Assembly (NCBI GenBank): GCA_964247055.1
Contig: OZ176056.1
Span: 8,556,001 to 8,620,000, forward strand
Origin: Paragordius varius
Lineage: Eukaryota; Animalia; Nematomorpha
Length of the DNA: 64,000 bases
Reading direction: 5' to 3'
Position 1 is the first letter of the stretch; the number at the start of each line of letters is the position of its first letter. The notes under the pieces are model-generated. The model made no database searches, was not told the DNA's origin, and saw only the letters and a program-made list of their open reading frames with translations. Positions 16,826-63,660 of the stretch are shown in pieces. A program made the position numbers and the translations under genes.

Positions 16826-17010
16826 CTAATTTTAACATAACGTAAATAGTATAGTCTAAATTCTTTAAATATAAGGCTTAAAATGCGGCCTCCGTTTTAT
16901 AAAGTTGCGACCGTAAATATTATCCCGTCAGCAGACAGAACCGTCAATAATTCAAATATAATTGATTGAAAGCAACTATGATCGCAATCAGAAAAATATT
17001 TATAAGTAAA

Positions 17011-19056: not shown

Positions 19057-19215
19057 AATGGTTGCTTATTTCATACCATAGTAGGGCAATTCTCAACACA
19101 GTAGTGTATGGAAAAACCATACAAAGACTTCAATAAACCATTATTTTCTTCCTTTTTTCCATACAGTACTGTTGTGTTGCAATTTGCCTTACTATTATAG
19201 AAATAAGCAACCATT
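19057..19215. mobile_element. MITE-like element with ~60 bp inverted arms (left arm mostly lost in unit 2)
   Basis: AATGGTTGCTTATTTCATACCATAGTAGGGCAATTCTCAACACAGTAGTGTATGGAAAAA pairs with TTTTTCCATACAGTACTGTTGTGTTGCAATTTGCCTTACTATTATAGAAATAAGCAACCATT. Confidence 0.65.
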
Positions 19216-37500: not shown

Positions 37501-38898
37501 TTATGGCTAATTTTCATGAAACTTTAATTGATTTTTAACAAAACTTAAGGAAACTTTAACCGATTTTTAGCAAATTTTAGCCGATTTTTACCAATTTTTA
37601 GGGAAACTTTAAACGATTTTTAACAAATTTTAAGGAAAACTTTAACCGATTTTTAGCCTATTATAAGGAAAATTTAACCGATTATTAGCAAATTTTAAGA
37701 AAACTTTAACCGATTTTTAGTAAATTTTAAGGAAATTTTAGCAAATTTTAAGATAATTTTAACCGATTATTAGCAAATTTTAAGAAAATTTTAACCGATT
37801 TTTAGCCTATTATAAGGAAACTTTAATCGATTTTTAACAAAACTTAAGGAAACTTTAACCGATTTTTAGCAAATTATAGGGAAATTTTAACCGATTTTTA
37901 ACAAAACTTAAGGAAACTTTAACCGATTTTTAGTAAATTTTAAGGAAATTTTGGCAAATTTTGAAAAATTTTAACCGATTTTTAGCAAATTTTAGGGAAA
38001 TTTTAACCGATTTTAGCAAATTTTAACCGATTATTAGCAAATTTTAAGAAAATTTTAACTGATTTTTAACCGATTTTTAGCAAATTTTATGAAAACTTTA
38101 ACCGATTATTAGCAAATTTTAAGATAATTTTAACCGATTTTTAGCCTATTATAAGGAAACTTTAACCGATTATTAGAAAATTTTAAGAAAACTTTAACCG
38201 ATTATTAGCAAATTTTAAGATAATTTTAACCGATTTTTAGCAAATTTTAAGGAAACTTTAATCGATTTTTAACAAAACTTAAGAAAACTTTAACCGATTT
38301 TCAGCTAATTCTAAGGAAACTTTAAGCAATTTTTAGCAAATTTTAGGTAAACTTTAACCGATTTTTCAAATTTTAAGGAAACTTTAACCGATTATGGCTA
38401 ATTTTCATGAAACTTTAACCGATTTTTAACAAAACTTAAGGAAACTTTAACCGATTTTTAGCAAATTTTAGCCGATTTTTAGGGAAACTTTAAACGATTT
38501 TTAACAAATTTTAAGGAAACTTTAACCGATTTTTAGCCTATTATAAGGAAACTTTAACCGATTATTAGCAAATTTTAAGAAAACTTTAACCGATTTTTAG
38601 TAAATTTTAAGTAAATTTTAGCAAATTTTAAGGAAATTTTAGCAAATTTTAAAAAAATTTTAACCGAGTTTGCAAATTTTGGGGAAATTTTAACCGATTT
38701 AACATATTTTAAGGAAACTTTAACCGATTTTAGCAAATTTTAAGATAATTTTAACCGATTATTAGCAAATTTTAAGAAAATTTTAACCGATTTTTAACCG
38801 ATTTTTAGCAAATTTTAAGAAAACTTTAACCGTTTTTAGGAATTGTTAAGAAAGAAACTTTAACCGATTTTTTTTAAGGTAACTTTAACCGATTTTTA
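22503..38898 (+). repeat. 32 bp satellite B, unit 2 (~16.4 kb, higher-order structure)
   Basis: Same consensus. Rare variants recur at ~0.89, 1.14, 1.64, 2.78 and 6.24 kb spacings. Confidence 0.98.
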
Positions 38899-41808: not shown

Positions 41809-41926
41809 AAGGTTTCGACTTTGTGGGCTAGGGTTAGGGTGAGGGATTGGAGTTGGTTCATTTTCTAAAAGAAGTCCGCAGGACTTCCTCGGGCTGCGAA
41901 GCAGGCCGAGACCCACGCATTATCTT
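41809..41926 (+). mobile_element. G4 + twin-hairpin module, unit 2
   Basis: Essentially identical to 8593-8710. Confidence 0.55.
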
Positions 41927-43942
41927 ATTATTTATACCTTATATTTATAATTAATTTTTTACTTAAATACAAAGATCCCAATAAAAAATTATTAATAATA
42001 CAGAGTTAGGTATTGAATTTTATTGGGAAATAATTGGAGATCCGTTCTAGTATTAGTAAATAAGAACAATGGATTAAACATTTTTTTAGCTGTACTGCAA
42101 ACATTACATAACATGTTTACATTAATTTTTATTACCCAAATCCTTAATATATATCATATAGTTTAGGAATCCTTATTTTTAACTTCTTAATAAAAATTTT
42201 GTGTTAGGTACAAATTGTCATTCTATATTCTGCTTATTGATTTAATCAGCTTTAGTTTGTACTTCATCTTAATTTAATCTATTTAAATTTTATATAAATT
42301 ATAAAAAGATGTCTTTATTTGTATTTAAAAATTAAATCTTTGAAAAATAGGGCCTTATCCAAACTAGACCACCTATATTTAAAAATAAAAATTTAATTCG
42401 AAACATAGTTAAATTTAAATTATTTCGTTTTTAATTATATATTAATAGCATTTTAATTTTGATTCATTACTAATTTTAAAATTGATTAAGGTCCTAGAAT
42501 TGAATTTAGGTATCTGTAGGAAAAATTGTGCATTGCTCTAAGTTACATGGTTTGAAGAATAAAATGTCAAGTAAACGAATTATATATTTATTTCTATATG
42601 TGTAAGACTCATTTCATATGTTTTTGGGATGAAATAACCCTAACCAACTCATATTTGGATAAACATTAAGGCTTTTGACTTTGTGGACTAGGGTTAGGGT
42701 GAGGGATTGGAGTTGGTTCATTTTCTTAAAGAAGTCACCCTTCATCCAATTTAAAGAGGTTCATGAATATTATTTGCTAAATCTGTGTTTTCCTATTATA
42801 AATTTAATTAAACTCACTATGACATCGCTTATATGTAAATATAAAAAAATATTTTTATCAAACCTGGATACTGTCGCAACAAAACCATTTATGAATTTAA
42901 ATCGAAGAATTGTTTATAATATAGTATTTTCATCATAAATTCTTAATTCAAAATGGTGTTTTATACGAAAATAAATTTCCAGATTACGCAAATTAGTAGT
43001 AGAGGAAAATCAATGATATAAGCGTTCAGTCCGATATAAGGGATTGCAATTGTTTTAGGGTAAAAGAAGACTTGTAAGCAATAAAGTGCTTATAAAATTT
43101 AATTTTAAATTTTTCTAATAAATTTGATCAAAATAATTGTAAATATCGAAGTTAATACTCTAATATATATATATATATAAAATTACTAATGATGGATAAG
43201 AGGATTTGATTTGTCAAATTACCTATGAATGTAAAATAGTTAGTTTAAAACCGAATAATATTAGTGAGCAAATCCTAAAATGATAAAATATGTTTATTGG
43301 AGAATGAATATAAGTTAAAGTTTAATTAATTATAGTTATACTTACCCAAGGTATAATATACAAGAGGCATCAATACAATTTAAATATTAAATAGCCATAT
43401 TATAAAAATTTATTTATATTCTCATCTTTATCGGAGACAAAAATATTTTTTCATGTCATACCACATAAATAATTATATTAAAAAATCAACATTAACGATA
43501 TAAGTTAATTTTATTTAAGTAATTCCAAATTTTTTAATCCAAATTCATTTCTCTTTTGCTAGGTGGTATTCATACATACATAAATTCAAAAATTTGCTTC
43601 ACAATACTAAATTCGGACAGGATGGTTCATTATATGCCTACTTTGTTTCGGAAAAGTTATGGCTTTTTGAATGCGTTTAGTTGAAAATATTTTACATTTT
43701 TCAATGGATATCACAGAATTATGACAAACCAAAAACTTTAATTTGTTGTGGAAAGCAAATGTGAACTTGATTCCGTATTAAATTTGGAAATTAACTCAAA
43801 TTGTATGGATCTTGCAGTGAGTAGCAAATATAATTGTTTATTGCGTTCTATTTTGGACTTTATATAAGGATTGTTTTCTTCAAAAAACTTAAAATATATA
43901 CGCAAATTTTTATATATTTTTTTGTTTTGAGTATTATTTTAG

Positions 43943-44077
43943 ACTTTATAACAAAACTATCAACACATAACATTACAAGAATTTTCCGGGTGTGTTTAAG
44001 CTGGTTTATTACCTCGGTCTAAAGATGTCATTTTACTGGCAGATCTTGTGGATTCGTGTAAACCTGGAGATGATATT
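43943..44077 (+). pseudogene. MCM2: MCM2 pseudo-exon, unit 2
   Basis: 135 nt between TTTTAG and GTAACA: [43 protein letters not shown]. This matches the MCM2 segment I recall as [45 protein letters not shown]. Two TAA stops. Confidence 0.9.
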
Positions 44078-44577
44078 GTAACAATTTTTTTTGTTTTCTT
44101 ATGTAATTAACACATAATTCACATACACATAACATCATTTTTAAATATCTTTAACTGTTTTCTATCAGGTTTTTTTTAATTAAGCTTCAAATATTATATA
44201 ATTAATCATACACACAATGCACACAATATTCTGTTGGATATAAATATTCTAATAAAATAGGTCAAAAATTAATAGGTTGCTTTTAATTTCGGGACGAATC
44301 ATCTCAAAATTCCAAATTATCCCCATTTTTTTATAATATTTTTAGGATAACAAAAACTCTTTATATATAATATATATATATATAGGATAAACTTAAAAGA
44401 ATTGATTAAGTTTAATTGGGACTTTTGTAGATATTAAGTTTTTATACCACTGAATAGGTCATCTAATGGTAACAAAGTGATAAGAAGCACTATATGAAAT
44501 TATATGTGATTAGAATTTCAAAATAGGTTATTTTAGATATATTTTGATCAAATTTTAAACGAAACATTTGGTATTTA

Positions 44578-45230
44578 ATGTCCACAGGGCATATTCTTGG
44601 GTTCTGCGCCAACAGTAGTCGATTAATTAACTTGCGACATCATAATATAGTGGGTCACATAAAACAAAACCTCCCATCCAATGCACGACTAATATCCGAA
44701 AATCAAGCGCTGGACTCGTCAGGATTACGACCCGATCTCGTGGTGGCCCAACAAATGCCTTATCATCGATCCAACTGTCACCCACGAGAACGGGCCCAAA
44801 GCCCTAGATGAAGCACATAATATTAAGATAGAGAAGTATCGTCACCTCACAGTCTCACTTTCCGGCCAATTTGACGAGGTTTATATCATCCCAATCGTCG
44901 TGGGCGCACTTGGATCATGGCACCCCAAAAACAAAAGATTATTCGAAAACATTAATATGAAAAATAAGGCTGAGATGAGAAAGGATATAGTCATCGAAAC
45001 CATTAAATTTTCCTAATATATTCTTTGAATTTACCAGTGGTAGAAACTAAATCCCCTCCCTCCCGGAAACATCCACGTCCAACCTCATCCCACAGTCCCA
45101 CTGCACATCCGTAACACAATAAGGCTCAATTTGTATCAATATATCAATTCTGTCCATATGATCACCTATTTATATTCTTTTTAGCATGTTTTTTTATATT
45201 CCTTATATTTTTATTTTTATCAAAATAAAT
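44578..45230 (+). mobile_element. 5'-truncated RLE-type non-LTR retrotransposon (NeSL/R5/Utopia-like), unit 2
   Basis: GHILGFC (end of the CCHC knuckle), RHHNIV, EN..GLRPDLVV, a frameshift, then KCLIIDPTVTHEN..K.EKY..PIVVGALGSWHPKN. This is a PD-(D/E)xK endonuclease, and VG(A/S)LGSW is typical of the NeSL clade. The 3' UTR ends near AATAAA at 45224. Confidence 0.9.
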
Positions 45231-47572
45231 ACACAAATCAAATTAAATACCTAAATAGTTAGAATTGAAAAGTCAAAGGTTAAATATATTGTTCTGCTTT
45301 CGAAAAATATTTTGTGTTATAGTTTTAGGTTTTGTCATGTATATTTTCAATCTTTACAGTAAATAGGGTTAGAAATATAGAGATAAAAATTCCTTTGTGT
45401 ACAATATATTAGGAGGATTAATAAATTTGAAAAATCAACATCCCCAGAGATTAACATGAATATATTGAATATTACTCTAATGGTATTTTTAGGATGCCTT
45501 ATCCCATAGAAATCTTCAAAATAAAAATGACGCCATCTTACCATTTATAAACCCCGGGGAGAACAGTAACAAACGCAAAAGATAAAAAGATCCAAGTGAC
45601 CCTATTGGTGACATTTAAAGCGCATGAATTACTAATTGCAAAAATATTAAGGATTAAACATTCTCGGCTAAAGCCGCCATAAACTAATCTTATCAAATAA
45701 CAAAGAATTAACATTTAAAATCAAACAGAAGTAGGTTGGCGATGAATTCCTACATCTGGTTCACAAATACTTAAAAGACGTTGGGAATTAAAACAACTGG
45801 TGATTTTACTATGTAAATAATACATATAAAAATAAATGAATACTAACAATATAACATTTTTTACTACTCATACATTACTTGCGGCAATTTTGACTTAATA
45901 ATGATATTGATATCTAAATTACATCAAAATACATACGTTTAAAACTATAAGTATAATAAAAAAATGAAAGCTTATTTAAACTGTATTACATGCAATTATT
46001 AAAGAATATACTGCTTTGCAGGAATGTATCCATCTTGCTAAAATGTAGTTATGAATATTTGTAACGGAGGTTATCATAAATTGCAAATTTTCATTTTTCA
46101 AACATCATTTGATAAAATTATTAAAGCCCAACACTAAATTAATAACCAGAAATAATTAAAACATATTATTTATCAATTAGATTGGATAAGCATTTTCAAA
46201 ATAAGTAATGTTTTTCCACTGTTTGGCACATTCCTTTTTCAAGGTATCACCGATCTTATACGATGCCAAAGTTGTGCCAGATATTTTGAACTGATATTGA
46301 TTATCACTGCGGTTAAGAGCGGTCAATTTGTTGCAGGCATCATTAAAGTATTCATTGTCTTGTATATTATATATATATATATATATTTAACCTCGCTCTC
46401 ATAATCAAATGCTCAATTCCTTAAAAAAATCCTATATTTTGTCTTAACTATCAGAAAAATTATTTGAATAATACATTTAAAATTAATTAGTTTGCTTATA
46501 TGAAGGTATACAATTCAAACTAGCATATATCTTAAAACTATTCTTATGAACCTTAAATTATAAGATAAGAAAGACAACGCGTAAAAAAAATTATTTTCCA
46601 CATAAATTGCTTTTACAAGATCTATATAACATATAATATGTTAATATTGTAATTGATAAACGAGTGTAAATAAAGTAATAATGATAAAAAAAATTGACAC
46701 AGCTCGACAACTTAACAATTAAATGGTATAGAAGTTTAAAATTTAAAATATATAATTTAGTGCAGGTGAACCAAAGAGTCGCAAGCCTTTTTTAAACGTT
46801 TTAAACTTAAAAATCCAAAATTAGAGACCAAACGTTTCAGGTGGCCATAACATTTAGGAAAAAAAAGTTTTTATAACTTTGGGGGAAAATTAAAAACTCT
46901 AAAAAAGATTGAGAAGCACTGCAGCGAAAAATGAAACGGTCCAGCAAAATGGTCGGTGTCAGAATTTAATAAAGGAGCACTAAATGACCAACCTGCATTT
47001 AATGATTATTTTAAAATCTTACTAATAGAAGAAGAAACAAATATTAGCATCCTAGAAGTTATACTATAAAATGTCATTGGTATATACCATTTATTTCAAA
47101 TTCACCCTTAAACAATTCAAATTTACCTATAAATATTCAAAAATTTAAAATTACCTATATTTTTTTATATTTTTAAAAAATAAAATTTTTGTTTTAAATT
47201 AAAATAATGCTGAAAAAATAATATAGTAATTGAAAAACGCTATGAATCAAATTTATTGCTGTAAATGAATTGAAAATATATTATTGCATATAAAATGGTC
47301 AAATATTCTAATAACAATATATATAAAATTAAAGAATTAAAAGCAAGAATCAATTTTTTTATAATTACTTTTTACTATTTCACCAATTCAATATCTTGAG
47401 TTAACTATATAATCCGTCACTTTTTTCCCGTCAATAATCGCATCTTTTTCCTGTATACTGAAATTTCAAGAATTTTGCCCCTGAACATTACTACGTGTTT
47501 GGATGAGTTTTTTGGCTCTAGAAAATTATTATAATTATCTAAGCGATTATATAAATATTGTTCGGTTAATAG

Positions 47573-47837
47573 TTGGATATTTTAATATTCCGTAAAGTGA
47601 ATCCCTCATTCAAAATGTATTGCGTTGGTGGATAACACTTGAAGGTACTGGTCATTTAGAACAAAAAGATTTATAATTTTAAACATCATGTAAATGGTTC
47701 ATCTGATTTATATGAAGTTGTGAGTCACATGTGTTAATTTTAATTCTTCGACTGTGCATAGCAAAATAGATAATAAACAGAGCAAAATATTTATATATGC
47801 TAAGCAATTTGGCTGTTTTAAAATATAAAGATTGCAT
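47573..47837 (-). pseudogene. Truncated 5' remnant of the LRR gene, unit 2
   Basis: Matches 16562-16825, carries a +1 base near 47700, and similarity ends after ..LRNIKIS. Confidence 0.85.
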
Positions 47838-48634
47838 CTAATTTTAACATAACGTAAATAGTATAGTCTAAATTCTTTAAATATAAGGCTTAAAATGCGG
47901 CCTCCGTTTTATAAAGTTGCGACCGTAAATATTATCCCGTCAGCAGACAGAACCGTCAATAATTCAAATATAATTGATTGAAAGCAACTATGATTGCAAT
48001 CAGAAAAATATTTATAAGTAAAGGGTGGTGATAAACTCAAATTCGAAGGCTTGAGGCCTTCTTCTCAAATGGCAACAAGGGATGGGGACATGAATGAAAC
48101 CAAGCAGCAAGGATTGCCGGATTGAAGGATTACGAGGTAAATATATTGTTTAGGTGTATTGGGAGAAACTTTATTGGGGAGGCGTTCACGAAGGAGCTGT
48201 GCAAAGGAGCTACCCAACCAGAAGCCCTGAATCGAGGTCCTGGACTTGGGAATGGCCTATCAATGGGATGACATATGGAAAAGAGGTAAACCTAATGTTT
48301 AGGTGGGATGGATGGCCTTTTGGGGATTCTTGAGACGGAGCTTGTCAAGCCAGCACTACCCCTGATGATCAAAACAAGCTACTTGGGAGCAGGCTTGGTT
48401 GTTGGATGGCGACTTGGTTGGATCAAACAACACTGCTACTTGGAGGATGGCATTCTGTTGAATGCACAACTCTCATTTTACTTGTGGAGAGTTTTTGGGC
48501 CAAATGACTCTCTAGTGGGAGAATATTTCCTCCTTTGGGGAAAAATCAACTCTTGTTATTATTGAGAGAGTTGTTTTCTCCAAACGTGTGAAGGAGGAGG
48601 ATTTATTTCTCCCATTAGAGAGTGAGTCTGGTCC

Positions 48635-48700
48635 CTAAGTCCAAAATTTTATTTTGTGCACTCTTACTCCCGGACGCTCAAAATAAAATTTTGGACTTAG
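48635..48700. other. Perfect 22 bp inverted repeat with a 22 nt loop (imperfect copy at 17625-17690)
   Basis: CTAAGTCCAAAATTTTATTTTG / CAAAATAAAATTTTGGACTTAG. Confidence 0.8.
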
Positions 48701-49727
48701 AATATTTTTTAATTTTTTTTCTCGCCCTTTGGGGGGGGTTATATATATTTATTTATATTTTTTAATTTTTTTTCAAAAAATATAAGATAAAGTAAACATT
48801 ATTTATTGACAATAATTATATAAAATATTCATTTTTCTGTTTGTTTTCATTCTTGTCTTGTTGGTTATTAATGATCAACGTTTTGAGATTATGGTTTAAT
48901 TCTATTCGTATTTTTGTAAGTATTTTCGTGTCTTGTTGGTTATTCATGATCAACGTTTTTAGATTATGGTTTTCTGGTATATTCTGATTCTATAAAAATT
49001 AATAAACATTAGTTTTAGAAATTAAATTTTCAATGTTACCACAAACTAATTCAACCTAGTAAATCAATTTTTACTATTTTTTACAATATTGTCAATTAAT
49101 TAGCATGTGGAAATTTAGCAGTAATTTTTAAATAAATTTTGACGTCTGAGTCATTTAAATTTAACCTTTATTTTATGATTGTCATTATAGAACTAATATT
49201 GGGATCAATATAAACCGCTAAAATTAAAATCAACAAATTTGAAATCATTTAATTGTTAACCTAAAACAATAAAATCAGTTTAAAAACCCATATTTTTATT
49301 CTTTTGAATTCAAATGCTAAAAAAATATGAGTTGGACAGGTTTTTAACAATTTTATTTATATTCAAAATTAGCAGTTTTACAACCAAATAAACTATTTTT
49401 TACCGATTTTGGCTATTAATATGTTTGTATGAGCTATTTTTTAAACAAATAAATATATTAATTGAATGCTGTCTAGCACATAAGGAATTATTTATTACAA
49501 ACCAGTAAATTAACAAATTTAGGTAGATTTAGGTAATTGAATTTAGATATAAAAAATGGTAAACAAATCATAAAACAAACAGTGTTAGGGTCAAAACAAA
49601 TTTAGGAAGGCAATAATATCCTACCTATTATAAAATTATTTATTCAATGATTAAAAAACAAGTATTTCATTCAATAATTAACTACAATGGGATCATTTTA
49701 AATAATTCCTCTTATCAATTAATTAAA

Positions 49728-49847
49728 AAGAAATGCGTAGGTCTCGGCCTGCTTCGCAGCCCGAGGAAGTCCTGCGGACTTCTTTAAGGAAATGAACCAA
49801 CTCCAATCCCTCACCCTAACCCTAGCCCACAAACTCGAAACCCTAAA
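49728..49847 (-). mobile_element. G4 + twin-hairpin module, inverted copy, unit 2
   Basis: Matches 18678-18797, with one G>A change outside the hairpins. Confidence 0.55.
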
Positions 49848-52274
49848 AGTTTTTTACCCCTTATTGTAAAATAAATTTTTGCTAAATACCTTAAAATCCC
49901 TACCATTTAAAAACCATTGATCATGTGTTTAGTATGTTGTAATTCGCAGAACAGTAGTGTATGGAAAAACCAACAAACAATGTGTTCATAAACCATTATT
50001 TTCTTTCATTTTTCCATACACAACTGTTGTGTTGCAATTTGCCTTACTATGGTGTGAAATAAGCAACAATATATTATAATATAAAAATTAATTGAAAACA
50101 TTTGGAACACACCGCCATAGAGATTGATAAAAAAGTATTTATTATTAAGCTATCAATATTAGCAAATTAAACAGATATGAATTGGTATTATTTACCAAAT
50201 TTTATTTAGTTGTCTCAAAATGACATATAAGACCATTGTTAAGTAATCAAAGTTATTTAAAAATTAAGATGTAATTTAACTATAATAACGGTATTTTGTA
50301 TATTATAAAAATTAGGGTATAAAATATTTAAAAAAAATAATACCTAATCAATAAAAGTGAATCAAAATATTTTTAAATAACCTTAAGATTTAAGAAAATA
50401 ATAATTTAAATATATGTATTATATTAGTGATAAAAAGGAAGTATATTTATTTAATATATTCATTAAAATTAGTTATTTAAAATATAATTATATAAAAAAA
50501 TTAGTAAACTATATTTAAAAGTAAAGGTAATTAATTATTTATTTTCTAAATAAAAAACAGCTGAGAAAGAAAAGTCTTAATAAAATTTTAATATTAAACT
50601 TTAAATTAATGAAATAATAATATACAAAAAATCATTAGTTAAGAAAGTCTCCAATTTAAATTTGTTTATAATTGGTGATAAAAATTTTAATTTATATTAA
50701 TTTTATTTTTACGTTTGACAAATATTACTTGTAGTAATCAAAAAATTTTATAGTTATCAAAAATATAATTATCTAAACAGCTGACCATGAAAATTGGTTA
50801 TTTTATAAACAGTAAGACAGAAAAACAGATAAATACAATATTTTAATTTGATAATATTTAAAAAAGAGATTCTTATCAATAGATTACTATAGAAATATTC
50901 TAAATTAGTTGTTTGTTGTTCTTATATTTTAGCAAAAATTCTTTAAGAGCCAAAATTTTGAAAAACTCAGGTAACTTTATAAAAAAATATTTAAATAATG
51001 GTTAAGATATACCATCATAACTTTTGAGATTTTGACTTTTCCGCGCACACAATGTTCAGAAACCACATCATTCTAATTGAATATAAAATAATGTTTAATA
51101 ATTAAATCAATATGTTGTTTAATAAAAATGCTGGTTGTTTTATAGTTTTTTTCAATCATAGTTAACTGTTTATTAATGATATTTAGCGTTGTTTTAAAAA
51201 ATAAATGCGTTCACAAAAACATTATAGCGGTTATTTCTTATTTATTACTAATTAACAAAAAATAAAAAAATTGATTAATATTTAGCTTTTTTAGGAAAAA
51301 AAACAAATTAACTATTTATTTTTTAATAAAATTTAGCGTTTTTTGATGAAAATTAGGTTAAAATGTAATCGTTTATGTAGGAATGAAAAACATAGTTTTG
51401 AAAATATCAAAAAAACAGCTGTTACGACAAATTCAATTAAAATGAAAAAAATATATATATTTAACTAAAATTCAATACTGCCCTGTAGTTTTTCAAAAAT
51501 ATCTTACGGTAATTAATATCAGCTGATTTTTAATAAATATTGGAGAATAATTATTAAATTTGGCTGTTTTAATAAAAAAATAGTAATTGCATAATTTGGC
51601 TGTAGTTAAAAAATTTTATAAAAAAATATCAGTTTTTAATTATAATTGAAATGTATTATAAAGGATATCAACATAACTCTCCTATTAGAAATAGCTAGGG
51701 GTTTATTGGTATATAACTATATTATTAAAATCCAACTGTTTCTTAGCGTTTAAATAACTTATAAAACCAGGATTTTAATTAGGTTATTTATATGCAAATT
51801 CAAATTTTTAAAAGGAGCTCTGTTTTAGAGTTTTTTCCAAAAAATATAAGCTAATTAACGGTATAAAATTTAAACTGTTCTTAATAAAATTAACTTTTAA
51901 AGGGCTTTTTACAAAAAATTACCCTTTAAAACCAAAAAATTAATTAACATTTTTATAAATGGCATTTTGATAATTTAATAATGTAAAAATAAATACCAAA
52001 TTTCAATATATATTCAAGCCAAACGTTTTCCATTACGATTCGTTTAAGTTTTTGCGAATTCAGGCAACGCATTTCTAAATTAATATAAGGTATATATTAT
52101 ACATTGCTATATTAAAATGTATATATTAATATTATTATAATAAATTAACTGTTTGAATAAATAAACTGTATAAATCATAAATATTTCACTTTTAAAATAA
52201 ATCAACTGTTATAATAAATCAACTGTTATAGTTGAATCAGTATAAATAAATTAAATAGTTCACTTAAATTAATT

Positions 52275-52730
52275 AACTGATTAATTAAATCAATAACAAC
52301 TTATTAATTAAAACAACTGCTTAAAAAAAACTGCTTAAAAAAACAACTGCTTAAAAAAACAACTGCTTAAAAAAACAACTGCTTAAAAAAACAACTGCTT
52401 AAAAAAACAACTGCTTAAAAAAACAACTGATTAATAAAAACAACTGATTAATAAAAACAACTGATTAATAAAACAACTGATTAATAAAACAACTGATTAA
52501 TAAAAACAACTGATTAATAAAAACAACTGATTAATTAAAACAACTGATCAATTAAAACAACTGATTAATTAAAACAACTGATTAATTAAAACAACTGATT
52601 AATTAAAACAACTGATTAATTAAAACAACTGATTAATAAAAACAACTGATTCATAAAAACAACTGATTCATAAAAACAACTATAAAACTAATTAATAAAA
52701 ACAACTAATTAATAATGACAACTGATAAAT
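52275..52730 (+). repeat. Minisatellite A, unit 3 (roughly 25 copies)
   Basis: A block of AACTGCTTAAAAAAAC followed by CAACTGATTAAT copies. Confidence 0.97.
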
Positions 52731-53209: not shown

Positions 53210-56200
53210 TTTAACCGATTAGCAAATTTTAAGGAAATTTTAACCGATTTTAGCAAATTTTAAGGAAATTTTAACCGATTATTAGCAAATTTTAAGGAAA
53301 CTTTAATCGATTTTTAGCCTATTATAAGGAAACTTTAACCGATTATTAGCAAATTTTAAGATAATTTTAACCGATTTTTAGCCTATTATAAGGAAACTTT
53401 AACCGATTATTAGCAAATTTTAAGAAAACTTTAACCGATTTTTCAAATTTTAAGGAAACTTTAACCGATTATGGCTAATTTTCATGAAACTTTAACCGAT
53501 TTTTAACAAAACTTAAGGAAACTTTAACCGATTTTTAGCAAATTTTAGCCGATTTTTAGCAAATTTTAAGGAAATTTTAACCGATTTTTAACAAAACTTA
53601 AGGAAACTTTAACCGATTTTTAGCAAATTTCAGGGAAACTTTAACCGATTTTTAACAAAACTGAAGGAAACTTTAACCAATTTTTAGCAAATTTTAAGGA
53701 ATCTTTAACCGATTTTTAGCAAATTTTAAGGAAATTTTAACCGATTTTTAACAAAACTTAAGGAAACTTTAACCGATTTTTAGCAAATTTTAGGGAAACT
53801 TTAACCGATTTTTAACATTAAGGAAACTTTAACCGATTTTTAGCCTATTATAAGGAAACTTTAACCGATTATTAGCAAATTTTAGGGAAACTTTAACCGA
53901 TTTTTAACAAAACTGAAGGAAACTTTAACCGATTTTTAACAAAACTGAAGGAAACTTTAACCGATTTTTAGCAAATTTTAGGGAAACTTTAACCGATTTT
54001 TAACATTAAGGAAACTTTAACCGATTTTTAGCCTATTATAAGGAAACTTTAACCGATTATTAGCAAATTTTAAGAAAACTTTAACCGATTTTTAGTAAAT
54101 TTTAAGGAAATTTTAGCAAATTTTAAAAAAATTTTAACCGATTTTTAGCAAATTTTGGGGAAATTTTAACCGATTTAACATATTTTAAGGAAACTTTAAC
54201 CGATTTTAGCAAATTTTAAGAAAACTTTAACCGATTATTAGCAAATTTTAAGATAATTTTAACCGATTTTTAGCCTATTATAAGGAATCTTTAACCGATT
54301 TTTAGCAAATTTTAAGGAAATTTTAACCGATTTTTAACAAAACTTTAGGAAACTTTAACCGATTTTTAGCAAATTTCAGGGAAACTTTAACCGATTTTTA
54401 ACAAAACTGAAGGAAACTTTAACCAATTTTTAGCAAATTTTAAGGAATCTTTAACCGATTTTTAGCAAATTTTAAGGAAATTTTAACCGATTTTTAGCAA
54501 ATTTTAGGGAAACTTTAACCGATTTTTAACAAAACTGAAGGAAACTTTAACCGATTTTTAGCAAATTTTAGGGTAACTTTAACCGATTTTTAACAAACCG
54601 ATTTTTAGCAAATTTCAGGGAAACTTTAACCGATTTTTAACAAAACTGAAGGAAACTTTAACCAATTTTTAGCAAATTTTAAGGAATCTTTAACCGATTT
54701 TTAGCAAATTTTAAGAAAATTTTAACCGATTTTTAACAAAACTTAAGGAAACTTTAACCGATTTTTAGCAAATTTTAAGGAAACTTTAATCGATTTTTAG
54801 CCTATTATAAGGAAACTTTAACTGATTATTAGCAAATTTTAAGGAAACTTTAACCGATTTTTAGCCTATTATAAGGAATCTTTAACCGATTTTTAGCAAA
54901 TTTTAAGGAAATTTTAACCGATTTTTAACAAAACTTAAGGAAACTTTAACCGATTTTTAGCAAATTTTAGGGAAACTTTAACCGATTTTTAACATTAAGG
55001 AAACTTTAACCGATTTTTAGCCTATTATAAGGAAACTTTAACCGATTATTAGCAAATTTTAAGAAAACTTTAACCGATTTTTAGTAAATTTTAAGGAAAT
55101 TTTAGCAAATTTTAAAAAAATTTTAACCGATTTTTAGCAAATTTTGGGGAAATTTTAACCGATTTAACATATTTTAAGGAAACTTTAACCGATTATTAGC
55201 AAATTTTAAGATAATTTTAACCGATTTTTAGCCTATTATAAGGAATCTTTAACCGATTTTTAGCAAATTTTAAGGAAATTTTAACCGATTTTTAACAAAA
55301 CTTTAGGAAACTTTAACCGATTTTTAGCAAATTTCAGGGAAACTTTAACCGATTTTTAACAAAACTGAAGGAAACTTTAACCAATTTTTAGCAAATTTTA
55401 AGGAATCTTTAACCGATTTTTAGCAAATTTTAAGGAATCTTTAACCGATTTTTAGCAAATTTTAAGGAAATTTTAACCGATTTTTAACCGATTTTTAGCA
55501 AATTTTAGGGAAACTTTAACCGATTTTTAACAAAACTGAAGGAAACTTTAACCGATTTTTAGCAAATTTTAGGGTAACTTTAACCGATTTTTAACAAACC
55601 GATTTTTAGCAAATTTCAGGGAAACTTTAACCGATTTTTAACAAAACTGAAGGAAACTTTAACCAATTTTTAGCAAATTTTAAGGAATCTTTAACCGATT
55701 ATTAGCAAATTTTAAGATAATTTTAACCGATTTTTAGCAAATTTTAAGGAAATTTTAACCGATTTTTGACATTAAGGAAACTTTAACCGATTTTTAGCAA
55801 ATTTTAGGGAAACTTTAACCGATTTTTAACAATAAGGAAACTTTAACCGATTTTTAGCAAATTTTAAGGAAATTTTAACCGATTTTTAACAAAACTTAAG
55901 GAATCTTTAACCGATTTTTAGCAAATTTTAAGGAAATTTTAACCGATTTTTAACAAAACTTAAGGAAACTTTAACCGATTTTTAGCAAATTTCAGGGAAA
56001 CTTTAACCGATTTTTAACAAAACTGAAGGAAACTTTAACCAATTTTTAGCAAATTTTAAGGAATCTTTAACCGATTTTTAGCAAATTTTAAGGAAATTTT
56101 AACCGATTTTTAGCAAATTTTAGGGAAACTTTAACCGATTTTTAACAAAACTGAAGGAAACTTTAACCAATTTTTAGCAAATTTTAAGGAATCTTTAACC

Positions 56201-57128
56201 AATTTTAGCAAATTTTAGGGAAACTTTAACCGATTTTTAACAATAAGGAAACTTTAACCGATTTTTAGCAAATTTTAAGAAAATTTTAAGCGATTTTTAA
56301 CAAAACTTAAGGAATCTTTAACCGATTTTTAGCAAATTTTAAGGAAATTTTAACCGATTTTTAACAAAACTTAAGGAAACTTTAACCAATTTTTAGCAAA
56401 TTTTAAGGAAACTTTAACCGATTTTTAGCAAATTTTAGGGAAACTTTAACCGATTTTTAACATTAAGGAAACTTTAACCGATTTTTAGCAAATTTTAAGG
56501 AAATTTTAACCGATTTTTAACAAAACTTAAGGAAACTTTAACCGATTTTTAGCAAATTTTAGGGTAACTTTAACCGATTTTTAACATTAAGGAAACTTTA
56601 ACCGATTTTTAGCAAATTTTAAGGAAATTTTAACCGATTTTTAACAAAACTTAAGGAAACTTTAACCGATTTTTAGCAAATTTTAGGGTAACTTTAACCG
56701 ATTTTTAACAATAAGGAAACTTTAACCGATTTTTAGCAAATTTCAGGGAAACTTTAACCGATTTTTAGCAAATTTCAGGGAAACTTTAACCGATTTTTAA
56801 CAAAACTGAAGGAAACTTTAACCAATTTTTAGCAAATTTTAAGGAAACTTTAATCGATTTTTAGCCTATTATAAGGAAACTTTAACTGATTATTAGCAAA
56901 TTTTAAGGAAACTTTAACCGATTTTTAGCCTATTATAAGGAAACTTTAACCGATTTTAGCAAATTTTAGGGAAACTTTAACCGATTTTTAGCAAATTTCA
57001 GGGAAACTTTAACGCATTTTTAGCATAACCGATTTTTAGCTAAATTTAAGAAAATTTTAACCGTTTTTAGGAATTGTTAAGAAAGAAACTTTAACCGATT
57101 TTTTTTAAGGTAACTTTAACCGATTTTT
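53210..57128 (+). repeat. 32 bp satellite B, unit 3 (~3.9 kb)
   Basis: Same consensus; the variant set resembles unit 2 (AACAAAACTKAAGG, TTTCAGGG, AACATTAAGG). Confidence 0.98.
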
Positions 57129-59993
57129 AAATTGATTTTTATTTAATTTCTCATTTTTTTAACAAACTTTAAACAATTTTAAATAATTTTAGTGTATTTT
57201 TAAGAAACTTTAATACCATTTTTTTACTTTTTTTGAACCACCTTAAGTCATTTTATGTAAGAAAAAATAGAAGACACGAAAAGAAGGCGTGATATCAATT
57301 ATACGCCCGAAAACCCAAAACCAATTTGTTGTACATAATTTATATACTAGGAATTTTTTAGAGGAGGGGTGGTCAACAAGCGGCTCCTTAAATATTGAGG
57401 CTGCCGCGAGAAATTTATATACAAGTTTTTATAAAATTTAAGGAAAATTAATTATCTTAAACAAATTTTCTGAATAAATTTTTCCGGAATTTTGGCAATT
57501 TCCTTAAAAAAATGATAACAAAATAGTGGTTTTTACAGTATCATTTATAATATCTAATAAAATGTTAGCTAATGCCCATATATTTAGCCAATTTGGACCG
57601 CGAATCCATAGAATATGAAATTATTTTTTAAGAAATTAAATTTTATAGGACGAGCATGCACCTAAAAAATAATAACTTAAGTTCACCTTTATATGTTAAC
57701 ACTTCCTCTCCATTATCAAAAAATTTTTACAAAATTTTAGAGAAAGAAATTCAATGCTAAAATATTTTACCAAGAGCTATAATTTATGTAAAATTATTTT
57801 AAATTGGAAGGATATTTTAGATTTCAAAACAAGCAAGCATCTAAATAATTATAACATATGTTCACCTTTCTATTTCATCTTCCTCAAACAAATGAAAAAA
57901 AAAATTTTAAAAGATCAACAAACCCACTTGTTAGCAATATAGTATCATAATTAGACATCTATTTAGTTTTTTTTTAAAAATGGATAATAATAAAATATTA
58001 CTAGGTTTGTGTTAAAATTTGCCAGATAGAATTGCCAAGTAAATGGCTAATAGCAAGAAAAGATTCTTTTTGAAGTTAATAAATGTTCCTTATCATTTGT
58101 ATCTGGCAATATTTTAATGCAAACCCAGAAATGATTCGTAATTATACTGTATATATATAAAACATGCAAAACTTACATATATTGTTTGATCAGAATTGTA
58201 TTAAAACGTATTTTCCCATTTCAGTCGTATAATATCAACCATGTTTCCAATACTTTGTCGTTTTATTGTGGTCGATTGTTTCCAAGATTTGGTTGGACAG
58301 CTTCCTTTTTTCAATTAACAATGGTATTCTAATGATTAAGTATAAACAATTTACCTTATTATATAGTAATGGCAATACATTGTATAGCTGGAGAGATCAA
58401 GACATGACAAGGGAAGTTGCATATGCACCCAATCTATCCACCCATTTGAGAAAATGTGCGAGGAAAAAAAAAACTAAATAAATGAAAAAAAATAAAATTT
58501 TCGCCCTTTATATAGGGCATAATGTATATGTTATCTTTTTATCCAATCAAATTAATGTGTGCATTTGCGCCTTTTTCCCCCTTCTGGAAAAATGTTTCAC
58601 ATTATTTTCCCTCTCTTTATTGCGCAACATTGTTTGGGCGCCTCTATTTTATTATTATTCCCTCCCTCCTCATGTGCACATTCCAATAAAACATATAATA
58701 TTATATATGATTCATCATATCTAAAAATAATCCTTTTTATTACAATAATGTTATTTGGCTGGCGCCTATAAAGAAATGTAAATAAAATTCGGAGAAAAAT
58801 ATGTTAAAAAAATATGGCAATAATATTTTAACAATCCTTATTAATAATAAATGAAAAATTTGAATTTATTTTCTTACTTAAATGTTTGATTACACAAATG
58901 GCTAATATCAAAATTAATTAATTAATTAATCTAATTTGTTTCAATATTAAAAAAAATAATTTTTCATAGAGGTATTTAAATTTTTACCAGGTTTTTTTTA
59001 TTTAAAACAGAATGTTTAAAGGCCTTTATAGATTATTATATAAAGATTTTAAATTATATATTTGATTTTTTTCAAATGGTTTCTGCAATCATTTAATGTC
59101 TAATTAATGTTAAAATCAACTAACCTTCAACAACAAAGAGCTCTGAATTACGTTTTTTGAGTTCCAAAATAATTATAAATCATCACAGATAATTATATTT
59201 AGGTAAAAGATATTCAAAATGTACTTAAGATTACGTAGATATTATTCTTTCTTAATCCATACTAATATATATATATATCAGATATAAGTTATTATTTTGT
59301 TTTAATTCAACTAAAAAATTTGTAAATATAAGCATGAGAATAAGTTGTGTCCTGTGAGGATAAGGGTTATTGTAAGAAGCTTTGTTTCAGTTTTTGAATA
59401 GAAGGCCGAAACTCTGTCTTTTATTAAAAGTTATCTTTATTAAAACTAAATTTTAACTTTTTGTATACCATAGAAAGATACAGAATACCAGGGACTTGCT
59501 ATCTTAACATTAATTAACCTTTAAAAGTGTAATAATTCTCAACTGTGAAATGGTTGAATCCTAATTATTTTTATTTAAAATATAATGGATTATTAATTAA
59601 ATTATCCCAAAACCTTCTAAGCTTGCAATGTTAATTTCCTATCATTCATGCGAAATTATAAATAGTTCAATTTAAAAGTTAATAAACAGTTCAATTAAAA
59701 TATTAACAAATATTTTAAAAGTCAATCAAGGGAGTTTCTTCATTCAATAACTATATATAACCACACGACAATAACGTGAACAAACTAAAACACGATAACA
59801 ATGTTGGATAAAAAAATAATTAATTCGTTCATTTTTTTTAATAATTAGTTCCGGTTTTTAAAAGCTGAATTGTAATCTTTTCAAACAGCAGACATTTATC
59901 TTCTTTACTTTAATTGAAAAACCAATAAAAATCTTTGGTTATATGATTAAAAATGTAAATCATTTCAATCTCTAGTTTATAGTATGATACTGT

Positions 59994-60111
59994 AAGGTTT
60001 CGACTTTGTGGGCTAGGGTTAGGGTGAGGGATTGGAGTTGGTTCATTTTTTTAAAGAAGTCCACAGGACTTCCTCGGGCTGCGAAGCAGGCCGAGACCCA
60101 CGTATTTTCTT
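59994..60111 (+). mobile_element. G4 + twin-hairpin module inside a diverged patch, unit 3
   Basis: G4 motif and both stems intact; hairpin-1 loop GCA>ACA. Confidence 0.55.
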
Positions 60112-62375
60112 ACTACTTATACCTTATATTTATGAATAATTTTATAAGGTCACCAATTATAATTTATAAATAATACAGAGATAAGTAAAAAAAGTTGAAT
60201 TTTATTAGGAAATAATTAAAGATCCGTGCTAGTATTTGTAAAGAAGAACAGTGGTTTAATCTTTTTTTAACTAAAAGGACTTGCAAACATTACATACCAT
60301 GTTTACATCTAATTTTTATTATCCAAAACTTTAATATATTTCATATAGTTTAGGATTATCTTACTATTTATACCTATTTATAATTAATTTTTACTTAAAT
60401 ACAAAGATCCCAATAAAAAATTATTAATAATAGAGAGTTAGGTATTGAATTTTATTGGGAAATAATTGGAGATCCGTTCTAGTATTAGTAAATAAGAACA
60501 ATGGATTAAACATTTTTTTTAGCTGTACTGCAAACATTACATAACATGTTTACATTAATTTTTATTACCCAAATCCTTAATATATATCATATAGTTTAGG
60601 AATCCTTATTTTTAACTTCTTAATAAAAATTTTGTGTTAGGTACAAATTGTCATTCTATATTCTGCTTATTGATTTAATCAGCTTTAGTTTGTACTTCAT
60701 CTTAATTTAATCTATTTAAATTTTATATAAATTATAAAAAGATGTCTTTATTTGTATTTAAAAATTAAATCTTTGAAAAATAGGGCCTTATCCAAACTAG
60801 ACCACCTATATTTAAAAATAAAAATTTAATTCGAAACATAGTTAAATTTAAATTATTTCGTTTTTAATTATATATTAATAGCATTTTAATTTTGATTCAT
60901 TACTAATTTTAAAATTGATTAAGGTCCTAGAATTGAATTTAGGTATCTGTAGGAAAAATTGTGCATTGCTCTAAGTTACATGGTTTGAAGAATAAAATGT
61001 CAAGTAAACGAATTATATATTTATTTCTATATGTGTAAGACTCATTTCATATGTTTTTGGGATGAAATAACCCTAACCAACTCATATTTGGATAAACATT
61101 AAGGCTTTTGACTTTGTGGACTAGGGTTAGGGTGAGGGATTGGAGTTGGTTCATTTTCTTAAAGAAGTCACCCTTCATCCAATTTAAAGAGGTTCATGAA
61201 TATTATTTGCTAAATCTGTGTTTTCCTATTATAAATTTAATTAAACTCACTATGACATCGCTTATATGTAAATATAAAAAAATATTTTTATCAAACCTGG
61301 ATACTGTCGCAACAAAACCATTTATGAATTTAAATCGAAGAATTGTTTATAATATAGTATTTTCATCATAAATTCTTAATTCAAAATGGTGTTTTATACG
61401 AAAATAAATTTCCAGATTACGCAAATTAGTAGTAGAGGAAAATCAATGATATAAGCGTTCAGTCCGATATAAGGGATTGCAATTGTTTTAGGGTAAAAGA
61501 AGACTTGTAAGCAATAAAGTGCTTATAAAATTTAATTTTAAATTTTTCTAATAAATTTGATCAAAATAATTGTAAATATCGAAGTTAATACTCTAATATA
61601 TATATATATATAAAATTACTAATGATGGATAAGAGGATTTGATTTGTCAAATTACCTATGAATGTAAAATAGTTAGTTTAAAACCGAATAATATTAGTGA
61701 GCAAATCCTAAAATGATAAAATATGTTTATTGGAGAATGAATATAAGTTAAAGTTTAATTAATTATAGTTATACTTACCCAAGGTATAATATACAAGAGG
61801 CATCAATACAATTTAAATATTAAATAGCCATATTATAAAAATTTATTTATATTCTCATCTTTATCGGAGACAAAAATATTTTTTCATGTCATACCACATA
61901 AATAATTATATTAAAAAATCAACATTAACGATATAAGTTAATTTTATTTAAGTAATTCCAAATTTTTTAATCCAAATTCATTTCTCTTTTGCTAGGTGGT
62001 ATTCATACATACATAAATTCAAAAATTTGCTTCACAATACTAAATTCGGACAGGATGGTTCATTATATGCCTACTTTGTTTCGGAAAAGTTATGGCTTTT
62101 TGAATGCGTTTAGTTGAAAATATTTTACATTTTTCAATGGATATCACAGAATTATGACAAACCAAAAACTTTAATTTGTTGTGGAAAGCAAATGTGAACT
62201 TGATTCCGTATTAAATTTGGAAATTAACTCAAATTGTATGGATCTTGCAGTGAGTAGCAAATATAATTGTTTATTGCGTTCTATTTTGGACTTTATATAA
62301 GGATTGTTTTCTTCAAAAAACTTAAAATATATACGCAAATTTTTATATATTTTTTTGTTTTGAGTATTATTTTAG

Positions 62376-62510
62376 ACTTTATAACAAAACTATCAACACA
62401 TAACATTACAAGAATTTTCCGGGTGTGTTTAAGCTGGTTTATTACCTCGGTCTAAAGATGTCATTTTACTGGCAGATCTTGTGGATTCGTGTAAACCTGG
62501 AGATGATATT
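62376..62510 (+). pseudogene. MCM2: MCM2 pseudo-exon, unit 3
   Basis: Same sequence as 43943-44077. Confidence 0.9.
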
Positions 62511-63010
62511 GTAACAATTTTTTTTGTTTTCTTATGTAATTAACACATAATTCACATACACATAACATCATTTTTAAATATCTTTAACTGTTTTCTATCA
62601 GGTTTTTTTTAATTAAGCTTCAAATATTATATAATTAATCATACACACAATGCACACAATATTCTGTTGGATATAAATATTCTAATAAAATAGGTCAAAA
62701 ATTAATAGGTTGCTTTTAATTTCGGGACGAATCATCTCAAAATTCCAAATTATCCCCATTTTTTTATAATATTTTTAGGATAACAAAAACTCTTTATATA
62801 TAATATATATATATATAGGATAAACTTAAAAGAATTGATTAAGTTTAATTGGGACTTTTGTAGATATTAAGTTTTTATACCACTGAATAGGTCATCTAAT
62901 GGTAACAAAGTGATAAGAAGCACTATATGAAATTATATGTGATTAGAATTTCAAAATAGGTTATTTTAGATATATTTTGATCAAATTTTAAACGAAACAT
63001 TTGGTATTTA

Positions 63011-63660
63011 ATGTCCACAGGGCATATTCTTGGGTTCTGCGCCAACAGTAGTCGATTAATTAACTTGCGACATCATAATATAGTGGGTCACATAAAACAA
63101 AACCTCCCATCCAATGCACGACTAATATCCGAAAATCAAGCGCTGGACTCGTCAGGATTACGACCCGATCTCGTGGTGGCCCAACAAATGCCTTATCATC
63201 GATCCAACTGTCACCCACGAGAACGGGCCCAAAGCCCTAGATGAAGCACATAATATTAAGATAGAGAAGTATCGTCACCTCACAGTCTCACTTTCCGGCC
63301 AATTTGACGAGGTTTATATCATTTCAATCGTCGTGGGCGTACTTGGATCATGGCACCCCAAAAACAAAAGATTATTCGAAAACATTAATATGAAAAATAA
63401 GGCTGAGATGAGAAAGGATATAGTCATCGAAACCATCAAATTTTCCTAATATATTCTTTGAATTTACCAGTGGTAGAAACTATATCCCCTCCTTCCCGGA
63501 AACATCCACGTCCAACCTCATCCCACAGTCCCACTGCACATCCGTAACACAATAAGGCTCAATTTGTATCAATATATCAATTCTGTCCATATGATCACCT
63601 ATATTTCTTTTTAACAATGTTTTTTATATTCCTTCAATTTTTATTTTTATCAAAATAAAT
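63011..63660 (+). mobile_element. 5'-truncated RLE-type non-LTR retrotransposon, unit 3
   Basis: Same 5' junction as unit 2; the 3' part mixes unit-1 and unit-2 variants. Confidence 0.9.

Follow-up and report, generated by a model that had tools for sequence, protein, structure and literature searches.

An apparent chimera of two sequence variants, joined out of register beside a conserved module, in a tandem array of Paragordius varius

The window analysed here – a 64,000-nt stretch of the Paragordius varius genome – carries part of a 220-kb tandem array, the units of which are 18–33 kb in length and include long satellites. The genome as a whole is 110 Mb with a GC content of ~24% and TTAGGG telomeres. 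Our subject is unit 3 of the array. Its unique part, defined from a tandem-repeat table and self-BLAST, begins at position 57029 on the forward strand, fills the window to its last base at 64000 and runs on to approximately 73431 (extended coordinates). Self-BLAST, with satellites masked, covered the window and was extended to the adjoining 26 kb downstream. Four units were compared over their full unique parts (unit 4 as far as this downstream sequence extends), and the remaining six C7 units over the 4.3 kb surrounding the module described below; all ten were aligned around the left edge of the diverged patch that gives unit 3 its interest. Scans of the window for Rfam families, tRNAs and ORFs returned nothing relevant to the joint at which that patch ends.

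Up to position ~58967 sliding identity among the units is 96–100%. Thence to 60354 the identity of unit 3 to units 1 and 2 is 51–90% (mostly 69–83%), and from ~60650 it is back at 98–100%. BLAST, sliding identity and multi-unit alignment delimit a patch at 58985–60354 (forward strand) that shares ~80% identity with the corresponding sequence of unit 1 (7535–8951). The latter represents the majority form of the array – the A variant – and the patch a second form, the B variant. A search for the source of the patch led to the adjacent unit: the equivalent stretch of unit 4 (C7:8636697–8638069), which adjoins unit 3 just outside the window, is 96% identical to it. There the B variant lies in register, with a single flank and no duplication, and extends ~200 nt past the flank, to about unit 1 position 9147. 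The first unit of the array contains a B-like tract of ~330 nt, and many character states are common to the B variant and the outgroup arrays on C8. An ectopic donor was sought and rejected: apart from unit 4 and the first unit's partial tract, the best that the assembly offers is 77–80% identity. For a diverged patch private to unit 1 the assembly likewise yielded no donor.

The left edge of the patch is an in-register fade, from A-like to B-like, into homologous sequence, and is common to units 3 and 4. Abutting it at 58985–58995 is a deletion private to unit 3, identified from the ten aligned units and the indel list, the size of which varies with the alignment from 42 to 47 nt. The B variant is native to the array and not foreign to it, and unit 3, as assembled, combines two old variants of one tandem array in a chimera.

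Inside the patch is a copy of a module (59994–60107, forward strand) that comprises a G-quadruplex motif (60010–60030), two hairpins (60056–60072 and 60073–60095) and a tail beginning at 60096. This copy is 97.3% identical to the A-variant module; its flanks reach only ~78%. In the reference copy of unit 1 (8593–8714, forward strand) the motif occupies 8609–8629 and the hairpins 8655–8671 and 8672–8694, with a predicted closing stem that pairs 8607–8611 with 8696–8700. The predicted DNA fold of the module has an energy of −18.7 kcal/mol and a z of −2.8; its centroid retains both hairpins together with the closing stem ending at 8700. The genome has more than 150 copies of the module. The tail reads ACCCACGCATT(A/T)(T/C), without CTAG, in all of the 30-odd copies seen; judged over unrelated contexts, the conserved 3′ edge of the module lies ~12–13 nt past hairpin 2.

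Beyond the module a flank that is single-copy in unit 1 (8703–8952, forward strand; self-BLAST and piece-wise BLAST) is present twice in unit 3. The left copy (60104–60354, forward strand) is of the B variant, being 97.6% identical to the single flank of unit 4 and 79.5% identical to the canonical flank. The right copy (60355–60605, forward strand) is of the A variant and is 97.6% identical to unit 1 8703–8953. Compared with one another by the same piece-wise BLAST, the two copies are 78.3% identical. Self-BLAST pairs unit 1 5687–8998 with 57140–60405 and unit 1 8703–11312 with 60355–62947; since these two pairs overlap, unit 1 8703–8998 is matched twice in unit 3. Directly compared, 60104–60405 matches 60355–60647 at 76%. 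An ancient tandem pair of flanks, one member of which had been lost elsewhere, was considered and rejected: the C8 outgroup arrays have a single flank copy, the divergence between the two copies equals that between B and A, and each copy has its closest identity to its own variant.

The point at which one variant gives way to the other, 60354/60355, joins the B equivalent of position 8951/8952 to A position 8703 (the A-side breakpoint falling between unit 1 8702 and 8703), with a register shift of 249–251 nt. Microhomology amounts to 1 nt: the A at 60355 could belong to either side, so the position is ambiguous by 1 nt and the joint reads either GG followed by A or GGA followed by T. The arrangement is unique in the genome, a single locus spanning an 80-nt probe of which unit 4 matches positions 1–41 and the A units positions 41–78. 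A 78% BLAST match across this probe prompted the idea of hidden homology at the breakpoint; local alignment of the flanks gave none, being no better than that of shuffled sequences (p 0.25–0.6). The signature of homologous gene conversion or non-allelic homologous recombination – an in-register exchange in shared sequence – is likewise absent at the joint. The last B marker precedes the joint by 14 nt and the first A marker follows it by 4 nt, and since the switch of variant and the shift of register coincide within 18 nt, a single non-homologous event made both.

The basic outline of this structure had been drawn in an earlier, sequence-only reading, which described 58985–60354 as a diverged paralog of unit 1 ~7535–8950 that included a module and ~245 bp of its flank, placed the restart of canonical sequence, ATTATCTTACTATTTATACC, at 60355 (unit 1 8703, 8 nt past hairpin 2) and held that the flank was present in both diverged and canonical form. 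Each of these elements withstood independent comparison, with the length of the duplicated flank refined to 249–251 nt (unit 1 8703 to 8951/8952). In terms of the predicted fold, the A-side breakpoint follows hairpin 2 by 8–9 nt and the base of the whole structure by 2 nt, on the strand bearing the G-quadruplex motif. The joint is not exactly at the end of the module: given where the conserved 3′ edge lies, it falls within the module tail, 4–5 nt short of that edge.

To the right of the joint, unit 3 has its counterpart in unit 2 at 41919–44889 (forward strand; self-BLAST and unit comparison). The first 160 nt of the right flank copy differ from unit 2 at five positions; the changes at three of these occur in no other A-variant unit. 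Mutagenic synthesis beside the joint was entertained as their source and discarded, three private changes in 160 nt not being distinguishable from the 2–4% divergence usual in unhomogenised parts of the array. Then, 160 nt from the joint, begins a perfect match: 60514–63322 (forward strand) is 100% identical to unit 2 42081–44889 over 2,809 nt, and probably represents a tract that was converted or copied recently. Starting at 63323, unit 3 is closer to unit 1 than to unit 2.

What kind of event produced the joint? B and A were joined once, without homology. We think it probable that this happened in the course of break repair or of replication template switching within the array, possibly with stalling, and not through Helitron transposition. 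The 1-nt overlap does not separate end joining from template switching, and two routes may be envisaged. By the first, one period of the array would have been duplicated head-to-tail, which predicts the order A unit, B/A chimera, B unit. The observed order is A (unit 2), B/A (unit 3) and B (unit 4) – parent 1, chimera, parent 2, head-to-tail. The B patches (96%), the opening 300 nt of units 3 and 4 (100%) and 60514–63322 with its unit 2 counterpart (100%) are each other's closest relatives, as copies of one duplicated segment should be; beyond 63323 and in the spacers this relation fails, and later conversion may be the cause. Because unit 3 resembles unit 1 past 63323, and because it lacks both the 2.7-kb deletion and the diverged patch carried by unit 2, a simple one-period duplication requires later overwriting, and the history of the unit can be rebuilt only in part. 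By the second route, a break in a B unit would have been repaired by leftward copying of an A unit until synthesis halted and the end was joined. Synthesis could have stalled at the module structure, which would fit the position of the breakpoint on the strand of the G-quadruplex motif; as a causal step, stalling is a plausible guess that we put forward tentatively.

Both routes have parallels. Tandem duplications that are non-homologous or involve microhomology are produced by end joining or by replicative template switching of the FoSTeS/MMBIR kind. Like the products of such duplication or of unequal exchange, unit 3 is arranged head-to-tail, has 1 nt of microhomology and no transposon ends, is a chimera between parental types and has one breakpoint beside structure-forming DNA. 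It differs in that diverged variants have been joined 250 nt out of register – which is why the event is visible as a small flank duplicated in two variants – and in that the identity expected of the two large copies would mostly have been overwritten by later conversion. Synthesis-dependent strand annealing in which synthesis is incomplete or overshoots, and which is finished by end joining, has been described for gap repair in Drosophila. Unit 3 resembles its products in the abrupt end of a tract copied from a homologous donor, in a junction that lacks homology and in the tract of perfect identity beside the joint. In unit 3, however, synthesis would have overshot by 250 nt, leaving a duplication and not a deletion, and the perfect tract starts 160 nt away.

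A different origin had been suggested from the sequence alone: that a related element carrying its own 3′ flank replaced the resident copy, as in end-bypass by Helitrons. Part of this stands, in that a diverged relative with its native flank is indeed joined just past the module. The Helitron component – a Helitron-like element that read past its terminator and took with it 250 nt of its own flank – does not, even though it has a real basis: the twin hairpins of the module match a genuine Helitron 3′ end of this genome (C7:9190830–9190883), the A variant restarts within 3–5 nt of the expected Helitron terminus, and read-through with transduction of flanking DNA is documented for Helraiser (PMC4778049). 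The likeness to end-bypass in that element (PMC4778049) consists in the homology of the hairpins to a Helitron terminator and in the carriage of 3′ flank. Against this, a Helitron 3′ terminus has its hairpin about 10–12 nt upstream of CTRR, and the genuine Helitron end here consists of hairpins and ATTTAAGCTAG abutting T, whereas in the module the hairpins lead into ACCCACGCATT. The left edge of the patch is an in-register transition, shared with unit 4 apart from the private deletion, and has no 5′ terminus (TC...). The putatively transduced flank is the B variant's own sequence, native to the neighbouring unit, where it continues for ~200 nt more. Nor does the flank copy end in a new terminator: no significant hairpin is predicted there (fold of 60255–60400, z −1.4, with 21 of 200 shuffles as good), the final bases are TTTAGG and not CTRR, and the right joint, in either of its readings, is not CTRR abutting T. 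Helitron transposition inserts at AT sites (PMC4778049), but at this locus the resident A-variant module and the sequence upstream of it are missing, which is replacement and not insertion between A and T. We consider a Helitron origin highly improbable. Similarly little credence can be given to an assembly artefact, in which chimeric reads or the mis-joining of units would have made the joint. Units of 18–33 kb with long satellites are difficult to assemble, but a joint that lacks homology is not something that overlap assemblers create, and the contig bearing the array spans telomere to telomere; moreover, the B patch of unit 3 differs by ~4% from that of unit 4 and is accompanied by the private deletion, so unit 3 was not stitched together from its neighbours. 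With the private changes in the right flank copy, these features mark unit 3 as a distinct sequence, which no splicing of unit 4 to unit 2 would give.

Two further accounts accept the joint as real and place its cause within the array. In one, a 250-nt flank duplication within a single variant was followed by conversion from the other variant, which stopped at the duplication joint where homology ends. The first unit does contain a nearby in-variant tandem duplication (222 nt, at a distance of 106 nt from its module) and conversion pervades the array, but two events would be required with ends coinciding within 18 nt, conversion would have to cross sequence of only 78% identity, and the flank copies diverge from one another as A and B do elsewhere, which fits a single A/B joint; we regard this as very unlikely. 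The other account is coincidence: the array is unstable and AT-rich, and an ordinary event in it, whether non-homologous tandem duplication or unequal exchange, would have had a breakpoint beside the module by chance, the module playing no part. This deserves to be taken seriously, although we are inclined to doubt it. Indels and local duplications are frequent in the units and mostly distant from modules: none of ~17 other indels of 15 nt or more among the four units comes closer than 94 nt to a module, flank duplication does not recur in the other 22 distinct module contexts, and the conserved island at the inverted module of unit 2 stops 90–160 nt away from that module. There are two in-register variant switches inside the invariant module (one in the first unit, the other in C8 units L045/L046), and such switches are expected if the module is the sole near-identical stretch between diverged variants. 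On the other side, a random breakpoint would fall within 10 nt of the 3′ end of a full module with a chance of under 1% – a rough estimate, and no fair p-value for the coincidence, since the joint was chosen for its nearness to the module. In addition, 2 nt separate the breakpoint from the base of a predicted structure that is stable and lies on the G-quadruplex strand, and boundaries between variants touch the module in three cases, which come from two separate arrays.

Whether the repair or template-switching event that we favour was guided to its position is a related issue. The sequence-only reading had offered, as its alternative, that the module end is a hotspot for nicking or recombination, in which case junctions in other units should cluster there. 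The structural breakpoints of other units – the ~17 indels, the 22 contexts and the 222-nt duplication – do not, and are largely random relative to the module. In favour of recurrence are the one out-of-register joint, the two in-register switches inside the module and deletions within the hairpins of decayed copies; the idea of a hotspot is weak. Ends of perfect-identity runs were also considered as recombination boundaries (7 of 54 are near the module) and set aside, such ends in near-identical A units being single private base changes. A broader conjecture, to which we assign a small chance, is that the G-quadruplex and twin hairpins form a physical barrier to repair and replicative synthesis: the module would set the ends of conversion tracts and duplications in these gene/satellite arrays, and frequent breakage and repair there would also keep it near-invariant while its flanks diverge by 20–25%.

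By itself the joint is one further non-homologous joint in an unstable tandem array, from which an unsupported Helitron story has been removed. Under concerted evolution of tandem arrays, relic variants survive where divergence blocks homogenisation. The array follows this pattern insofar as the A variant is near-identical across units, while islands of B, or of other private variants that are ~20–25% diverged and donorless in the genome, persist in single units; it differs in that the joint of unit 3 is not a homologous conversion boundary. Relic variants of this kind let the array record where exchanges start and stop, and a few such ends touch a conserved, structure-forming module. Were a genome-wide excess of such ends to prove true, the module would offer a test site, natural and present in many copies, for the effects of hairpins and G-quadruplexes on duplication and gene conversion. 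The same excess might also account for the conservation of the module. As it stands, the link between such ends and the module is anecdotal.

A second copy of the module, identified by BLAST at 61100–61169 (forward strand), is degenerate and lacks both hairpins. Its offset from the start of the flank is 996 nt in unit 3 compared to 751 nt in canonical units. The hairpins of decayed module copies are prone to deletion.

The flank, the ~250 nt directly 3′ of the conserved G-quadruplex (G4)/twin-hairpin module, is present twice in unit 3 of the tandem array: on self-alignment, unit 1 8703-8998 is matched twice. The left copy (60104-60354) is 79.5% identical to the canonical flank, the right copy (60355-60605) 97.6%, and the two are 78.3% identical to each other; the module of unit 3 is 97.3% identical to the canonical one. 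Sliding identity among units 1-4 (unit 4 being the next unit, just past the window) is 96-100% as far as ~58967; from there to 60354 unit 3 is mostly 69-83% identical to units 1 and 2, and from ~60650 it is 98-100% identical. The sequence-only reading is thus borne out in its description: unit 3 diverges from unit 1 through module and flank to 60354, canonical sequence restarts at 60355 with what is position 8703 of unit 1, 8 nt past hairpin 2, and the flank exists in a diverged and a canonical form.

The setting is chromosomal. The assembly comprises 110.6 Mb in 44 contigs, and the 9.56-Mb contig C7 (OZ176056.1) has TTAGGG repeats at its left and right ends, which identifies it as a eukaryotic chromosome; the window (C7:8556001-8620000; GC ~24%), in which Rfam and tRNA scans gave no matches, lies ~0.94 Mb from the right end. 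The array extends over 9-10 units (C7:8.52-8.74 Mb), with three periods inside the window, and related arrays are carried by contigs C8 and C4. In each period ~15.7 kb is unique, and the remainder is made up of a 17-nt satellite, a spacer and a 32-nt satellite that spans 3.7-16 kb; the unique parts occupy 5687-21410 (unit 1), 38840-52294 (unit 2) and 57029 onward (unit 3). A further 26 kb downstream of the window, reaching unit 4, was added, and full unique parts of four units were compared, unit 4 as far as this added sequence extends. The sole sizeable ORF per unit (15667-16644 on the minus strand) encodes a leucine-rich-repeat protein of 325 aa.

A whole-genome search gave unit 4 (C7:8636697-8638069, 96%) as the best match of the diverged patch at 58985-60354, compared with 79-80% for all other C7 units and 75-78% for the C8 arrays. 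Judged by these identities, the patch is a variant of the same array (B, the minority form, as opposed to the majority form A) and not an import. The proposal that a related element with its own 3′ flank took the place of the resident copy therefore stands as regards a related donor, but the donor is a native variant and not an element. B begins at the same position in units 3 and 4, where 42-47 nt are deleted in unit 3 alone. Unit 4 carries B in register through module and flank to about position 9147 of unit 1, with one flank copy and the second module at normal spacing. A B-like tract of ~330 nt is also present in the array's first unit, lying directly upstream of the module and reaching into it. 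Since B agrees with the C8 outgroup arrays at many sites where A differs, it looks like a relic unerased by homogenisation towards A; such relic variants are, on these alignments, a general feature of the array.

The joint at 60354/60355, where B gives way to A out of register, is singular. Only unit 3 contains the whole of an 80-nt probe that spans it; the probe's positions 1-41 have a 100% match in unit 4, and 41-78 match A units. The overlap is 1 nt (the A at 60355), and local alignment of the two breakpoint sides was no better than that of shuffled sequence (p 0.25-0.6). B-specific bases end 14 nt before the joint and A-specific bases begin 4 nt after it, such that the change of variant and the register shift of 249-251 nt fall within 18 nt of each other. 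This coincidence points to a single non-homologous event as the origin of the joint. In the first 160 nt to its right five positions separate unit 3 from unit 2, three of them with bases absent from all other A-variant units; from 60514 to 63322 the two are identical over 2,809 nt, and from 63323 unit 3 follows unit 1 instead, indicating that many conversions have made the units mosaic. The event that formed the joint may also have produced the perfect block, or the block may reflect later conversion that was unable to pass the joint.

Each unit holds three module-related copies: a full one on the plus strand (8593-8714 in unit 1; ~115-125 nt), a decayed second copy (9445-9522, ~860 nt downstream) in which neither hairpin survives, and a full inverted copy (18679-18796). 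The module begins with a G4 motif (GGGCTAGGGTTAGGGTGAGGG), continues with hairpins of 7 bp and then 10 bp, and closes with a tail (ACCCACGC); its 3′ edge, judged over unrelated contexts, lies 12-13 nt past hairpin 2. In the predicted DNA fold (-18.7 kcal/mol, z -2.8) a closing stem pairing 8607-8611 with 8696-8700 encloses both hairpins. The full modules, in each unit, are arranged so that their hairpin tails face one another across the 10-kb gene-bearing part and their G4 ends point to the part with the satellites; their outer ends showed no target-site duplication. In the second copy (9445-9545) the G4 half is kept and GAAGTC is joined to ACCC..., with a C-strand telomere-like AACCCTAACC ~20 nt upstream (9423-9432). 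Intermediate stages are found in C8 arrays: some copies have 15 nt deleted between the hairpins, others are complete though decayed. In one of these arrays (L045/L046) four haplotypes carry between them at least five independent indels in the second module. At L026 (C2:15022793-15025914) three direct tandem modules with related flanks, 640-770 nt apart, form a small array with a period of module plus flank.

How the joint arose, and whether the module had a part in it, can be considered together. The sequence-only reading had invoked Helitron end-bypass, in which an element carries along its own 3′ flank. There is indeed a match between the module hairpins and a genuine Helitron 3′ end in the same genome (GAAGTCCGAAGGACTTC CTCGGGCTGCGTAGCAGCACGAG ATTTAAGCTAG|T, C7:9190830-9190883), and read-through transduction by Helitrons is documented (PMC4778049). 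The sequence of the patch, however, does not support this reading: there is no CTAG in the module tail, no 5′ terminus to the patch and no terminator-like fold at the flank end; given the position of the module edge, the joint lies 4-5 nt inside the module; the flank carried with the patch is native B sequence; and the resident copy was replaced, with no insertion at an AT site. The alternative offered was that the module end is a nick or recombination hotspot. In its favour, the B-to-A switch of the first unit maps to a 55-nt interval across the hairpins; the C8 neighbours L045 and L046 (6.05 and 6.07 Mb) show 16 differences over the 300 nt leading up to the module and are then identical for 807 nt, from inside the invariant first module to ~40 nt before the second; and deletions that end in or at the hairpins recur in decayed module copies. 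The two in-register switches are nevertheless expected, since diverged variants are near-identical nowhere but in the module. Against clustering, ~17 other indels of at least 15 nt in units 1-4 come no closer than 94 nt to a module, flank duplication is absent from all 22 other distinct module contexts, the conserved island at the inverted module of unit 2 stops 90-160 nt from it, and an ordinary 222-nt same-variant tandem duplication in the first unit lies 106 nt from a module. Ends of perfect-identity runs (7 of 54 near a module) are not a valid test in near-identical units. A causal role for the module in the joint seems less likely than not.

Two routes to the joint would fit. One array period could have been duplicated head-to-tail, from an A breakpoint in one unit to a B breakpoint in the unit that follows; units 2, 3 and 4 should then read A, B|A and B, exactly as they do. 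The patches of B sequence in units 3 and 4 differ by ~4%, an extent comparable to that of the private changes over the 160 nt beside the joint, which is consistent with one old event. Yet unit 3 is not unit-2-like beyond 63323 and lacks the 2.7-kb deletion and the diverged patch of unit 2, so that simple duplication must assume later overwriting. Alternatively, a break in a B unit could have been repaired by leftward copying of an A unit, synthesis halting just before the module and the end being joined without homology. On either route, the breakpoint on the A side falls 8-9 nt beyond hairpin 2 and 2 nt past the predicted closing stem, and leftward synthesis would use the plus, G4-bearing strand as template. 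Non-B DNA can stall synthesis, and stalling at the predicted module structure would be plausible.

Units 1 and 2 have diverged tracts of their own. A private 720-nt patch in unit 1 (9597-10318) reaches only 55-84% identity with every other unit; the best match genome-wide is 76%, suggesting either a relic variant or import from unassembled DNA. A patch of nearly 2 kb in unit 2 (48857-50570 versus unit 1 17848-19700) is 42-78% identical to units 1 and 3, which are themselves 99-100% identical over this stretch; within the patch, a 374-nt island (49567-49938) with the inverted module at its centre has 98% identity. Unit 2 also lacks ~2.7 kb found in units 1, 3 and 4 (47195-47572 versus 13821-16561), leucine-rich-repeat ORF included, which leaves one array unit without its gene. 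The tandem duplication in the first unit (L053, C7:8518702-8522566) lies ~106-330 nt upstream of the module in B sequence equivalent to window 59660-59888, with 5-of-6-nt homeology, AAA(T/C)AG, at its joint. GC-richer segments at 17435-17870 and 16970-17185, which have neither a long ORF nor an Rfam match, are 70-87% conserved in arrays on C1, C2, C4, C5, C8 and C9. The 17-nt satellite AACAACTGATTAATAAA sits before the 32-nt satellite, whose tracts (1970-5686, 22513-38839 and 53218-57025) differ in length between adjacent units from 3.7 to 16.3 kb and have an internal 11/21-nt sub-period, near the DNA helical repeat.
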